A DNA stretch of 64,000 nt from Diadema antillarum (GCF_040938485.1 NW_027272847.1:1-64000), one strand, 5' to 3'; shown: positions 34,201 through 64,000, counted from the first letter of the stretch. Translations and numbers: made by a program. Notes: generated by a model not told the origin, from the sequence alone.

Positions 34201-37200
34201 GCAAAATAAGTTTGATCAACCTATCACAAGAAATACAAATACAGGGGATGGGTGCACGAAGATCTCTGGTAGCAGTGTAGGCAGGGGACTTGCAATCTTT
34301 CTTTTATTGATATGCACACACCTGCCATCATCTTGAAAACTAGTTTGATTTTGAAAAATGACAACGTTCCACTGAGCTGAGACTCCAATGGTATAACATA
34401 TACTGGAATGACGACACATAACATATGTTGTTGTTGTTGTTGGTTTTTTTTTTGAACATCACTCTGTTCGGAAGATGGGAGAGATACCTACAGGAGGTTG
34501 GAGGAGATAAAATTCCTGGATGATTCAGGCGGGAATGCAAGTACACACATATTGATACATGTCATACTGCACTCGAAAATCATTTCCGTCAGACCATTTG
34601 AGAGAATACTGAATAATCAGCCGGCACATCGCAAGCAGCCCTCTGTGTACACGTGATCCGCCCACGATACAACAGCATTACTGCTGCATGATATCCGCAT
34701 CATCAAATATTTCGCTGGCACATTCTTTTATTTTTTTTCTTCCTACATAATTCTCAGGAGACTCAGCCAGCCAGATGAATGCAATACTATCATATAACAC
34801 AGCAAAACAGAAAGAATTCTAGTGGCTGCTATGTATGCATTACAGGGATCATTTTGCAAGTATTGGTGTTCAGGGCCTTCATTTCCTTTTAATTACATGT
34901 GGGATGTCTCCATAACTCTGCTGATAATGAATGAGTGTATTGCCACTAAATAGTAGAATATGACATTAGCTAGCATCTCTTTATCTTCATGCCATTATTT
35001 CTGTGGTCACGATTTTGGTCTTCTTCACTATGCCATACTTTTCTTCAGTGTAATCCTTGCATTAGAGGCAATATCTGTACACAAATTTGTAAAATGAAGT
35101 GCTTTACAACACAAATTTACTGTACATTTGTATGTGTACATTGTATGTGTGTGTGTGCGTGTGTGTGTGTGTGTGTGTGTGTGTGTGTGTGTGTGTCTGT
35201 CTGTCTGTCCCTAATAAACACTCTTTCCCTCTTTCTATTTTATTCGAGCACTGCGAAGGAACACTGACAGAAAGTTAAAAAAAAAAGAAAAAAGTGACAG
35301 TAAAACATGCTATTCATTTGCCTGTATTGGTGTAGACCTGTTCAGTTTGGGCATTGTTTTTTAATGTTTATGTCTACTGTATAAGCTGTGCCCAGATACA
35401 TGTATTTTCGTGAATGAGGAGGTCTTGGATATTTTTTGGAAGAAGTTGTTTTCGCAAATTGAAACCTAGGCTTTTGTAAGTGTACTACAGTGCACTCCCG
35501 TTATAACAAACACGGTTATAACAAAATTCTGGTTACAACAAAAAATTCAGGTGCAACATTATCCACTTATTTTTATTGTTTATTTGTTCAGTTATAACAA
35601 AATTTTGATATAATAAAGGAAAATTGCCTGTCCTGAGGACTTAATCATAATGGGAGTCCACTGTATTACCCTAGCGCATGGCGACATTTTTGCATGTTGT
35701 TAAATTCGTGGTCCAACAGCGATTTGCGAAATTCACGAAAATTTAAACTCTCACAAAAGTAACAGCTAATACAGTATTTCAGCCATAACTGGGGGCTTCA
35801 GCATGCCTAACAGTTGATTTATGCACTAGGACCCTGTTTACAGTGCGAGGCTTGGCCGCGGCCGAGCCGCAGCCCGGCCCAGCCCCGCTTCAGTGTAAAC
35901 GCGCAAAAGGCCAAATGCGAGGCCAAAATTGGCCTCGCATTTGGCCTCGCTCTGGAGGTGGTCTCGGCTGTGGCTCGGCCGCGGCCGAGCCCGGCCTTTT
36001 CTCAGTGTAAACGCAAACTGGGCCAAATGCGCGGCCAATTTCAGTCTGGCTTCCAAACCCTCTGCCTGTACTATTTCCCTAATCAGGATATTAACCCCCT
36101 CAACGTCGAAAACTAGCATAGTTTAAGGTGGTTTTGTCCTGCAAAGGATTTTTTCCTTCGACAAAGGTCTTTGCCTGAACGGCGACTTCGTCGACACGTT
36201 ATTCAGTTGGCAAAGGGTCTGAAAACCAGACAATACCAAATTGCGTTTGTTTACAAGTAGAGCGCCACTATGACAAAATATTGAAAGGTTTGAATTAAAA
36301 GCGCGGCCAAGCCCAGCAGTGTAAACGGACAAAATTGCGGGGCTCGGCCACGGCCGAGCCCGGCCCCGCACTGTAAACGGGGTCTAAGATTGCAATCCAC
36401 CTGACTCACTGCATATCCCATTTGTAATCATCTTTCCTTCTTTTTTCACGGAAGCCCCCTAGTCATGGCCGACATAAGTTACAGTGTTTTAAAACTGTAG
36501 GTCTACTGTGACAACAGGGGTGATGAAGCATTTGATCTACAGGACAGTTGCTGGTAGAAAGGAATGTACAATTTATTACACCACTTACACAGTAAAGTGT
36601 TCATCCCACTTAGGATTCCAAGTCTTCTTCACGACCTCTGTCTTGCGAGGCGGTTGGGAATCGACGACCATTTCCACATAGGGATCGCCCTTTCCACTGA
36701 AGAAGCTGCTGTTGTTGTCCTTCAGGTTTGCAGATTGTACTGGATTTAAAAAAAAAACAAACAAAGAAGAAAGGCAAAGACAATTAGACAGCCATGTAAA
36801 TGAAATATAAGTCACACAAGTTCTGACCCATCAACACACATGCTCTGGGTATTCACAAGCAGTACAAATGTACAATCGTACTGACTACAGCTGCATGAAA
36901 TACATGTATCAGTCAGTAATTTGATAAACATGATCACATTACAGTATTTGTTTTGTTTTCCTGTGGGGAGTGTAAGCAAATACTGTAAAAGTGGTTTCTT
37001 TCGCGTACAGAAACTTTCGCGGTTTCCATCGGTGCCGACTTTTTCGCGTGTGTTTAAATTCGCGGTCGGTAATGATAGCGTTGTAACAACCCAGGAGTTC
37101 AAAACATTTTCGCGTGATGTTAAATTCGCGGTTCAACCTCAAAGCGCGAAAATAAAACCACCGCGAAAGAAACCACTTATACAGTACCAAGCCACAGAGC

Positions 37201-60217: not shown

Positions 60218-61410
60218 AGGGATAGTACAGTATTGGTGGAGATGAGAATTGGGCTTTTAACTTTTTGTGAGATACCAAGAAAACACCTATGATATTGTAC
60301 AGAACATACCATTTTAAGAAGAATTCAAAGTTTATATAATGAAAGTCGGGTTTGGAATGACTGAAACATCCAAAAACAAAGTAAAACAAAGCGATCGTAA
60401 TAAAGTGTGGGTCCCAATTGGGGGATAATACTTTGTGTGGATTTTAGGGTCACAGGGTCAAAGGTCAAAGGTCACAGGTTATTTTGCGAAAAAAAAATTG
60501 AAATTTCATGTTTTTCTCCATATCTCGCAAATGGTTCAAGGTATCTTCATGGAACTTAGTATATATGCTTGTACTGATGGGCAGTGATTATCTAGGGAAG
60601 TTGGGGTCGTGGGTCAAAGGTCAGGGGGTCAAAGGTCAAGGTCAACTCCTCAAAATATCACTACTTTCCTTAGAATGCAATATGCCTGAAGGTTTTTTTT
60701 TTTATACTTGATGTATGGCATGTATTACCCAATATATATTTTTGGGGAAGTTTCTTGCCAAAAAGTCAAAGGTCAAAGGTCAAGTGAAAGTGCTAAATTG
60801 CACTTTTTCCTCCATATCTCGAAAGTAACTCCAGGTATCATCATGAAACTTACATATTTATGCATGTTCAACCTAACTCTTTTTAACTGTGAGGTCAAAG
60901 GTCAAAGGCCAGGTTTAGATAATGCTATTTTCCCATTTGATACTGAAATTATACTTTTCCTCAATACCTTGAAAATTACTCAATGCATAAACTTATAAAA
61001 GGGTCAAAAGTCAAGTAAAAATCATCAGTTTCCCAAATACCTGCACTCTGACATTTTAATCATTCATCCAATTGAACCTAGTTCTAGGAAAGTGAACATT
61101 CAGCACATTTGTGTCAAACCTGTCCTTTTAATATTTTGCCAGTTGTGTGAAACTGTCATCACACATTGTCAAGACATTGTACTATAGACCTATTAGGAGA
61201 ACCATGCATTATGGCGGAGGCATATAAGTAGCCGTAGTGATATGTCTAGTTGGATATATTAGCCATTTCAAAAACAATTTTCATCAAATAAACGTTGAAT
61301 TCCTCGTAGAATTACATGCTCTTTCATATTTCATAAGAGGTTTCTCACTATCTCACCGAAGAAATGTGAGAAACCTGAAATTAGGTCTCAACCGAAACTG
61401 TACGATCCCT
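60218..61410 (-). mobile_element. Kolobok-type MITE, copy B (inverted relative to copy A), interrupted by an ~830-bp insert
   Basis: 60218-60416 and 61251-61410 align to the reverse complement of copy A; TTAA at 60214-60217 and 61411-61414. Confidence 0.85.
60417..61250 (+). mobile_element. Probable 5'-deleted Helentron/HINE-type element (AAGGTCA-rich) inside MITE copy B
   Basis: Repeated GGTCAAAGGTCA; 3' end GGCGGAGGCATA..GTAGCCGTAG..TCTAGT followed by T; inserted at a T-run of the host. Confidence 0.5.
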
Positions 61411-64000
61411 TTAAGTGTCAAAACCAAGGACTGCAGCCTGCAGCTTTATGTTTCATGATACCCACAGGACACAATGTTCATTCATGATTCAGAACTGGTA
61501 TTCAAACAATCATGCCGCATCTAACTGATTTCATTCCAAGCATTCACTGAGCTGAGCTGCTGACATTTCAATCAAAGTCACATTCTCCTCATCGATAAAT
61601 TCGCCTACCCTACGTGTACAAGATGGTCAAATCGGCCAACTCGACGGCCACTGCTTGCAACAAAGAGGGTTCACGGTTCACCGAAGTGTTCAAACTCCTT
61701 GAAATAAAGCTATATCTGTACACAATACAGTGTTACAGCCTACTGAGCAGTAACAGGTAACTGTATACTTTTTATGTACATTATAAATTAGATTGGACCT
61801 CTAGCTAAAGCTAAGGCACAGTTCTGTACCTGTGACATAATAAAAGCCCTACCCATTGTTTGCTAGCAATAACAATATCTCTGTTCACTCTTTTGTTGCT
61901 TGCACAATGACTGCTTGCTACAATGTACGATGTCTCTGTTCAGTAACGTTATGTCTCTGGTCTCTGCTATCAAGTGCAATTCCACACTATTTTTAAGACG
62001 GCTGTTTAAAAATAGTTTAGAACAGAGTGATAGAGGTTTTCTCAAATCAGACGTTGTACCCTGTACACAGAAAGTAATGAATTTTAAAGTTTCATGGTTT
62101 TTAACCTACATGTAACAGTGATACAGGTAATAGTGGCAAACGCATACAGTACAATCCAATCATAATGAACATGGTTGCAACAAAACTCTACAACGAAACA
62201 AAAATCGAGGTCTAAAAATCATTATTCCATCTTTATATACTTTGTACTATTCAGCTATAATGAAAGAAAACTGCCAGTCCCCAGTATTTTGCTATTGAAC
62301 AGGAGTGCACTGTACTCAAATTACAAGAGATAACAATTACATGTACAGTGTACAGTGTATGTAAGTTGATGATGTCACAGTTTCACAAGTTTCCTACTGA
62401 TCTACACACAAATCTTCACTCACAACTTTTTGTTCAATGTTGTTCATGTTGTTTTTTTTCACATGATATCAATTCCAACAATAACCCACCTTACCATAGA
62501 CATGATCTTGTTCATTAAGCTGGTAATTGGTACATTGTAACTTGTTTTATTTTATTTGGTTGGTTTTAGTTGTCTTTTTTTTTTTTTTTTTTTTTTTTGG
62601 GGGGGGGGGGGGGGGGGTAATTATGACCGTATCTAATGTGTATTGTAAAACATTGTCAAACGCACAGAAAGTTGGTATCGCATTCACCATCCCCTTTCAT
62701 AGCTAAACTGGGTTCCCGTGGTCAATACATCTTTGTCTCTAATTTGTCACTATTCATAAAAAACCCAATAATAATAAAAAATAAATATAGGCAACTTTTG
62801 TTGAATTACATTGTATACTACACCTTATTTCATGTCCATTAATATTCAAATGCAATTCAAAAACTTGGCTTTTTTTTTTTCGTATACAGCTATGCAGCAC
62901 AAAGGAATTAAATGGATATGAGCTGCTTTACTACTGTTGCATTATTGGCAATATAAATGCACATTAAGAAAAATGTTTGTGTGTGTGTGTAATAAACAAA
63001 TACCTAGATTCTTTCTCCCTCTCCTCTTTTTTTTTCTTGTTTTAATTTTATGCATATGTCACATCTATAGGCAACCTGATAGAACAACATACTACATTTT
63101 ACAGTGAATTGTGAAAGTAAACACTTCATTCATTCTTACGATCTAATTTGCAGTCAAAAGAGAAATATGACTTACACACAACCTTACATATATGTACTAA
63201 ACACGTAAGTACTATCAAAGCCAACACACACTTTCTATTTTTATACATCTCGGGGTCTACAAAAGAAATCTTCATACTCTCCCTTCCCTTGAGAGTTAAT
63301 CACACAAAACAAAAGTGCTAATTAAGGAGGATCTAGACTCTTCCTTTACAGGAAGGACCTAGGTAAACATTACTGTGTCTCAATTACTTTAGTTATAAAG
63401 AACAAGTTTGTACCTTTCCTGCTCTCCTCTGCCAAGTCAATATCATTTCCTGCTTGTGTTGCAAGTAGTGTGACTTGCTCACTTGACTTGGCCCATGGAC
63501 GAAATAAAATATTCATAATCTGGTGGGAGGGGAGATTAGGGTAGCCAACTTGCATTACACTATACAGTGTACCTCTTCTCCTTCTTTTTTTATCTCCATG
63601 ATGAAACTCAACTGTCATAAAAATTGCTCAGCCACCTTTACTTTGATGTTGCACACAGGGCAGCTGTTTGGTGTTTTTTTTTTTTTGGTTTTTTGGTTTT
63701 TTGGTTGTTTTTTTTAATGCAACTCTCATGCTACTGGTGAAAGTGCACTGATAGGACTTACTTGTATTTCAAGAGTGCCCCTGCATTATAAGCTTTTTCA
63801 AGTTATTGATGAACCATCAAAAACTAAATTGTATTCATCTTTGGTATATTACTTATGATCAGCAGAATTGGGTATGTTCCTGCTTACATGTAAAATGACT
63901 TTATGTATCTAAAGGCCAATAGATGTAATCAACATGTGCATGAGGAATAAACAAAAAACTTTTGGTTTGTGCCATCACAACATTTTTTTAAATAATTTAT

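Follow-up and report, generated by a model that had tools for sequence, protein, structure and literature searches.

The stretch analysed here (the window) comprises 64,000 nucleotides of the genome of the sea urchin Diadema antillarum (GCF_040938485.1, NW_027272847.1:1-64000), contig C1959 of an assembly of 1.75 Gb, and is interrupted by runs of N at 14542-14900 and 19059-19203. The sole coding feature identified in it is an exon with a HECT ubiquitin-ligase domain, and the part from 28 to 64 kb may represent upstream introns of this HECT-domain gene. Our subject is the palindromic 8-mer TACATGTA, which is concentrated in that part together with relatives of the form TA[X]TA, namely TAC(A/T)GTA, TACANTGTA and TACANNTGTA. 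We consider it very likely that these words are scars left by the cut-and-paste excision of Tc1/mariner-type transposons. The initial annotation of the window had read them as footprints of this kind, and the interpretation is upheld by the enrichment of the words, by insertions and deletions (indels) between haplotypes, by a six-base insertion private to one repeat copy, and by resident TA-flanked elements with CA...TG ends that are candidate donors. The features are collected in Table 1, in which MITE stands for miniature inverted-repeat transposable element and haplotig for the allelic sequence with which the window was compared.

Table 1. Features of the window, in order of position
Feature	Position	Strand	Remarks
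322-bp tandem repeat, 4.5 copies, 91% identity	208-1667		Occurs elsewhere in the haplotig alignment as well
HECT ubiquitin-ligase domain open reading frame (exon)	5751-6131	-	Profile positions 184-252 of 306, E = 1e-22
20 arrays of at least two adjacent candidate scar units	28138-62359		For example 42216-42240, 52257-52272, 56068-56081, 62338-62359
Polymorphic candidate scar	29025-29032		TACATGTA in the window; haplotig lacks the six bases and has TG for the expected TA
MITE copy	35377-35774	+	Family TA|CTGTATAAGCTG...CAGCTTATACAG|TA; ~205-240 bp when unbroken
TACATGTA candidate scar	35397-35404		+CATGTA at a consensus TA within the MITE copy; haplotig identical
Nested 176-bp Tc1-type MITE, CAGTGCACTCCC...GGGAGTCCACTG	35488-35663	+	TA-flanked
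Candidate scar chain TA-CATG-TA-CAAG-TA-CATTG-TA-GGCC-TA	37394-37420
ACATGTACATGTAC run	39592-39604		Haplotig has an additional CAGTA at an inner TA
728-bp CAGT...ACTG non-autonomous element	46955-47682	+	Occupies the central TA of a TA(CATGTA)2 run
Polymorphic TA[X]TA cluster, ~10 indels	48396-51695
TACATGTA	52296-52303		A 6.5-kb CAGTACGCG...CGCGTACTG element of the other haplotype has its empty site at the first TA
Polymorphic TAGGCCTA	53338-53345		+GGCCTA at TA; absent from haplotig
Second MITE family copy	57449-57639	-	Lacks the candidate scar and the nested element; empty state at both sites

Enrichment of the words and differences between haplotypes

The window holds 38 copies of TACATGTA, 4 up to 28 kb and 34 between 28 and 64 kb, exactly the imbalance estimated by eye in the initial annotation. 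Dinucleotide-preserving shuffles yield 1.8 ± 1.2 copies with a maximum of 6, and Markov models expect 1.9 (order 0-1) or 5.1 (order 3); the annotated expectation of roughly one per 30 kb agrees with the lower of these figures, and the tandem forms described there are located at 39593, 39699-39712, 40832 and 40975-40988. Once homopolymers and (CA)n are set aside, TACATGTA tops the 8-mer families of the 28-64 kb part, where its density reaches 0.94 per kb against 0.14 per kb in 1-28 kb. The whole genome contains 304,942 copies (0.174 per kb), about twice the 154,757 copies of the reversed control word, and an unlinked genome sample of 56 kb has 0.18 per kb. By this measure 28-64 kb is a roughly five-fold local hot spot, and 1-28 kb is ordinary relative to the genome mean.

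The excess extends to other words of the same architecture. With microsatellites and one satellite-specific word excluded, the top TA[X]TA words of the window are those in which X is CATG (38 observed, 5.1 expected), CAATG/CATTG (20 and 2.6), CAG/CTG (51 and 20), CACTG/CAGTG (14 and 2.3) and GGCC (7 and 0.45), followed in significance by CAACTG/CAGTTG and CAAGTG/CACTTG. TACAGTA and TACTGTA, which had also been described as frequent, occur 25 and 26 times where the third-order model expects 9.5-10.7, a count that includes four MITE ends discussed below. All of these classes pile up in 28-64 kb, and their reversed controls are flat.

The allelic haplotig on contig C18 (G000:C18:6165001-6265000) was compared with positions 1819-64000 of the window at 93-99% identity; 58.5 kb of the 100 kb taken could be aligned. 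Among the 201 indels in this alignment, 38 measure 5-9 bp, and half of them (19) consist of X followed by TA inserted after a single TA; the TA[X]TA form at a TA is likewise seen in 26 of the 59 indels of 5-45 bp. Unrelated dinucleotides score at most 5 in the same count, and the higher scores of AC and CA largely reflect the TA events themselves at an offset of one base. The spike of such insertions between haplotypes that the initial annotation anticipated is thus present, with X built of CA.../...TG pieces. Sixteen events are canonical in having CA...TG, CAG or GGCC as X: CATG (three), CATTG (four), CACTTG (two), and CAGTG, CACTG, CAG, CAGTTATG, CAAATTTG, CAGTACAGTTG and GGCC (one each). 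All sixteen lie within 26.4-56.0 kb; the sequence aligned between 1.8 and 26 kb has none. As to TACATGTA itself, seven polymorphic sites differ through an indel and one through substitutions only, the latter inside a (TA)n tract; origin by substitution, which had been named as the observation that would speak against the footprint interpretation, is therefore the minor route among them. Every counter-test put forward in the annotation and run here turned out in its favour.

The majority of the 38 TACATGTA sites are the same in both haplotypes and are therefore old, and the approximately 16 clear scars that differ between the haplotypes are recent. The additional CAGTA of the haplotig at 39592-39604 is a Sleeping Beauty-type scar within an older CATGTA run. 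In the polymorphic cluster of Table 1, which coincides with the most divergent part of the alignment (92.7% identity), X is CATTT, CAGTACAGTTG, CATTG (twice), AAGCTG, CATATGATTC, CACTTG (twice), ATA and CACTG. In 36 kb of alignment from thirteen unlinked haplotype pairs that had turned up by chance, three of 35 indels are clean scars, with CAGTG, GGCC and CATG as X, so the process operates genome-wide, though more rarely elsewhere. At 21707-21713 one haplotype reads TACTGTA and the other TACAGTA; the pair could be alternative repair products of the central mismatch of one Sleeping Beauty-type scar, and a plain single-nucleotide polymorphism is equally possible.

A view of the insertion against a repeat consensus is offered by the MITE family of the copy at 35377-35774, more than 20 copies of which have TA on both sides. 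The initial annotation had set the 57.5-kb copy, which in reverse complement reads CAGATA|TTTTCGTG, against CAGATA-CATGTA-TTTTCGTG at 35397-35404. This difference is confirmed, and its direction is that proposed: 18 of 19 aligned family copies read ACAGATA|TTTTCG, and the window copy alone has CATGTA at this point, a private gain of six bases at a consensus TA in the one family covered by this test. At a second consensus TA (GTGTACTA|TTACC), three different copies contain the nested 176-bp CAGTG MITE, TA[CACGTG]TA and TA[CACCTG]TA, three independent states. Copies were also located in the genome for the repeat families at 37527-38151 and 38262-38793.

Candidate donor elements and the proposed excision cycle

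What could be the source of these insertions? As the initial annotation pointed out, the 728-bp element at 46955-47682 has a TACATGTA word on either side, at 46947-46954 and 47683-47690. It belongs to a family (CAGTCAAACCTGTCT; the CAGTCAAACC MITE family) with ~1,850 matched ends genome-wide. TA precedes 86 of the first 100 listed ends, and the bases further out vary; since the family duplicates TA, the empty site would be TA(CATGTA)2, as had been suggested. A hAT-type duplication of 8 bp for this element was ruled out, the family flanks being TA. An earlier pattern for its left end matched the two alleles only.

The genome also contains DDE/D transposases of the Tc1/mariner superfamily. At least eight copies of 99.8-100% identity (for example, G000:C399:1019633-1022848) represent a 1.9-kb element, TA|CACTACTC...GAGTAGTG|TA, which is frequently inserted in (TA)n tracts and carries an intact open reading frame of 347 amino acids with HTH_38, HTH_Tnp_Tc3_2 and DDE_3 domains. 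It looks recently active and is probably active now. The scar predicted for it under retention of three bases from each end is CACGTG, which is present at 52265-52272 and in a further locus (L049). The helix-turn-helix domain of the Tc3-type transposase has 121 matches genome-wide, and further Tc1 copies with CAGTAG ends were seen. The 6.5-kb CAGTAC...GTACTG element whose empty site lies at 52296 is present in the haplotig only; none of its eight reading frames of at least 90 amino acids matches Pfam. Taken together, the resident TA-flanked elements have the ends CACTAC, CAGTAG, CAGTGC, CAGTAC and CAGTCA, and the scars matching such ends are CATG, CAG, CAGTG, CACTG, CACGTG and CAGTTG. MITEs number in the thousands genome-wide and, like the Tc1 elements, have TA flanks and CA...TG ends. 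A second Tc1-type transposase frame, open over 352 amino acids, has at least 35 identical-scoring matches and lies within a repeat unit of more than 5.2 kb at 99.7-99.9% identity (for example, G000:C775:327500-332700).

Insertions of several bases at TA, their CA...TG content, resident TA-flanked elements with intact transposase genes and polymorphic insertions in scar TAs are all directly seen, and the following cycle would connect them. An element with CA...TG ends would insert at a TA and duplicate it. On excision the transposase would cleave the non-transferred strand some bases inward from each end, a stagger suggested by the shapes of the scars and by the literature, and the donor DNA would retain both TAs and two or three terminal bases per side, presumably to be sealed by end joining. 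Retention of 2+2 bases would give TA-CA-TG-TA independently of the element's third base, 3+2 or 2+3 would give CANTG, and 3+3 would give CACGTG and the like; TACAGTA or TACTGTA would result where CAG anneals with CTG. Because the element ends share CA...TG and differ at the third base, the 2+2 product TACATGTA would dominate. Each scar would add a TA, new elements and scars would use those TAs and thereby build arrays, and every scar would once have held an element. Being heritable, the scars arose in the germ line. The mechanism itself is already textbook knowledge; it is the scale that is unusual, the scars being unusually dense and the process still active.

Several observations weigh against this interpretation. 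No match with resident ends exists for GGCC, for which a TA-flanked GG...CC donor was not found, and the match is uncertain for CATTG and CACTTG. No resident CAA...TTG or CAT...ATG element was found that would explain CATTG by 2+3 retention, in a purpose-built search for terminal inverted repeats of CAA- and CAT-ended elements whose output was swamped by the palindromic scars; CATTG may instead contain one added base, and addition of a base during joining is likewise the alternative for CACTTG. Four of the TAC(A/T)GTA words are not scars, consisting of TA and the terminus of CTGTATA... MITEs. Among the insertions polymorphic at this locus, no case was found of an element in one allele and a scar in the other, and the polymorphic 6.5-kb insertion has a clean empty site with a single TA; excision itself was not caught in the act. 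The closest analogue is paralogous, with one MITE copy containing the nested element and two containing scars at the same consensus TA. The reading of the haplotype indels as gains and not losses is presumptive. Finally, the typical somatic scar of Tc1 in Caenorhabditis elegans is +4 (78%) and not +6 (PMC13148408), whereas the commonest heritable forms here are +6 and +7.

Arrays of the words and alternative explanations

The 20 arrays of adjacent units all lie beyond 28 kb, with none in 1-28 kb, and simulations yield on average 0.03, 0.8 and 1.8 arrays under Markov orders 1, 3 and 5. Uniform choice among the ~2,700 TAs of the dense region would give an estimated ~5 arrays by chance, a local excess of ~4-fold; depending on the null, the excess ranges from 4- to 600-fold. 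Reuse of scar TAs is seen in three cases: the CATGTA run that a CAGTA interrupts in one haplotype only, and the insertion sites of the 6.5-kb element (52296) and the 728-bp element (46955). Furthermore, four of the 100 listed CAGTCAAACC ends lie directly after TACATGTA, a position estimated to be occupied by ~0.25% of TAs (304,942 motifs among ~1.2e8 TAs, a total extrapolated from 4,477 TAs in 63.5 kb). A target context of TG-TA or TA-CA is not significantly enriched among the 16 polymorphic scars (5 of 16 versus 25%, p = 0.57). The proposal of the initial annotation that reinsertion into old footprints lengthens the runs holds for the individual cases and is in keeping with the array excess; regional hot spots alone would also produce the clustering that a true preference for old scars would explain, and the pure (CATGTA)n runs also fit slippage. 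We tentatively suggest that scars may form a major, measurable class of germ-line mutations in this urchin and may be self-reinforcing, in that new TAs in a favoured context attract further cycles, and arrays grow into low-complexity DNA such as (CATGTA)n and mark germ-line hot spots.

Growth of the tandem (CATGTA)n runs by replication slippage of the 6-bp unit, without repeated insertion and excision, appears rather unlikely to us, although it deserves to be taken seriously. It fits equally well the indel at 26449, where one TACATG is added beside an existing TACATG, and is compatible with the 210 pure three-unit runs found genome-wide and with the non-significant context of the polymorphic scars. 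Most arrays are, however, mixed, combining CATG with CAG, CACTG, CACGTG or GGCC (for example, TA-CATTG-TA-GGCC-TA, TA-CATG-TA-CACGTG-TA and TA-GGCC-TA-CATG-TA), and slippage cannot produce arrays of mixed units. Neither does it account for the CAGTA scar of one haplotype within a CATGTA run, for the two elements occupying scar TAs, or for the proportion of MITE ends abutting TACATGTA. The words might also be inherited parts of repeats or low-complexity DNA rich in TACA/TGTA, or have arisen by substitution through CpG decay of TACGTGTA or TACACGTA. In favour of such an origin, a large part of the excess disappears under Markov models of orders 5 and 6, which expect 14.6 and 32 copies, and the substitution-only site in the (TA)n tract is an instance of it. 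The high-order models, however, re-encode sub-words of the motif itself, and the remaining evidence makes this origin very improbable: the 38 window sites lie between unrelated flanks, the polymorphic sites differ by an indel in seven cases out of eight, and the MITE family consensus lacks the insert. The mixed array TAGGCCTACATGTA, with 3,244 occurrences genome-wide against 4 for the reversed control, points the same way, its flanks being mostly unique and often containing more scars; a few sites do share flanks, so some copies ride on repeats. Least credible of all, to the point of being negligible, is the notion that the palindromes are selected functional sites, such as transcription-factor or RNA-protein motifs in introns. 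Their palindromic form and regional clustering would suit that role, but they are present or absent depending on the haplotype, come in many length variants with only TA, CA and TG in common, occur within dead MITE copies and form head-to-tail arrays. Excision by Tc1/mariner-type elements thus remains the explanation that we prefer for TACATGTA and its CA...TG relatives.

TAGGCCTA is probably a Tc1/mariner-type scar as well. It might instead derive from another TA-duplicating group with GG...CC ends, for which ISL2EU-type elements, known for 2-bp duplications, are candidates, or from imprecise excision of AGG...CCT MITEs; we hold this for possible, if doubtful. Besides the missing GG...CC donor, such an origin is favoured by the abundance and polymorphism of the AGG...CCT MITEs and by the ~16% of listed TAGGCCTA arrays that are preceded by AA or AT, as a duplication of AWT predicts. 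Against it, both polymorphic GGCC events are exact +6 insertions at TA whose surroundings are incompatible with a 3-bp duplication, and most TAGGCCTA sites have G before and C after, as the CATG scars do. GG...CC MITEs were considered as donors and dropped, the family proving to have AGG...CCT ends and a 3-bp AWT duplication. Its 434-bp member at 56391-56824 is found in the window haplotype only and at first appeared TA-flanked; if the duplication is taken to be AAT, the haplotig provides its exact empty site.

MITEs of this AGG...CCT kind, with AWT (AAT/ATT) duplications, are seen at 56391-56824, at 31580-31913 and in one haplotig copy. As GACAAT or CACATT is frequent in their flanks, the target may be a longer palindrome.

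Comparison with known footprints and further insertions

Tc1/mariner transposases cleave the non-transferred strand some nucleotides within the element, and end joining leaves a footprint made up of the first or last 2-4 nucleotides between TAs, with TACAGTA or TACTGTA left by Sleeping Beauty (PMC6943129). The urchin words resemble the latter in the enrichment of the same two sequences and in one polymorphic +CAGTA, but here these are a minority class, part of whose count comes from the CTGTATA... MITE ends. A biochemical precedent for the 2+2 junction, in which two bases per end lie between TAs, is provided by ISY100, which is cleaved 2 nt inside its 5' ends (PMC2170065); ISY100 is, however, a bacterial member of the Tc1/mariner/IS630 group studied in vitro, whereas the urchin elements are known from sequence. 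Also close are Tc1 and Tc3 of C. elegans, the footprints of which are attributed to Eide and Anderson 1988, Plasterk 1991 and van Luenen et al. 1994 according to the citations in PMC2874221 and PMC13148408. TA duplication, CA...TG ends and terminal bases left after a staggered cut are common to both systems, and the resident urchin transposases share the HTH_Tnp_Tc3_2 and DDE_3 make-up. The nematode data come from revertants of marked genes, whereas fixed and segregating germ-line scars are observed here genome-wide; for most germ-line breaks in C. elegans, repair draws on a homologous template (PMC13148408).

A genome-wide catalogue of DNA-transposon excisions has been compiled from Asian and African rice, with the conclusion that excision is a real source of sequence diversity (PMC4423477). 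As in our case, two close genomes were compared and insertions scored against excisions. The rice study concerned plants, began from annotated elements and arrived at hundreds of events; in the urchin, an animal, the scars were found without their element, and are dense enough, with ~305,000 copies of TACATGTA, to shift 8-mer statistics. Our literature search found no paper on such scars in sea urchins and none tying TACATGTA to excision scars.

Work on excision scars usually relies on single reporter genes; in this case a wild genome displays them directly, and since both haplotypes are assembled, shared and hence old events are distinguishable from segregating, recent ones. The scars could gauge past excision activity even for families without surviving copies and map its regional hot spots, and could reveal the cleavage stagger and the outcome of germ-line repair in an echinoderm. 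They could also show what share of small indels, including frame-shifting +5 and +7 events, is due to transposons. If our interpretation is true, scars make up about half of the 5-9-bp indels in hot regions. The excess of the motif should not be taken for regulatory motifs in word-based searches for enhancers.

Insertions of other kinds were encountered in the same alignment. A 186-bp insert at 23664-23849, which the other haplotype lacks, has inverted GGGCAATTACCCCC / GGGGGTAATTGCCC ends, a degenerate TTAGGG telomere-like interior and a direct repeat of ~10 bp, CATC(A/G)AAAGG, on each side. At 22018/22019 the haplotig alone has an inverted-repeat element of ~210 bp with ACTGTAAAAGTGGA... ends, inserted exactly at GG|GTAAGT, which resembles a 5' splice site. 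A 3.76-kb haplotig insert at 37903 has CAGGGTTCTCGCCAG inverted ends and a 5-bp duplication of GTATC. Altogether at least ten insertions of transposon size, belonging to several kinds and with duplications of 2, 3, 5, 7 and 8 bp, distinguish the haplotypes, and the assembly is thus a ready source for calls of polymorphic transposons.

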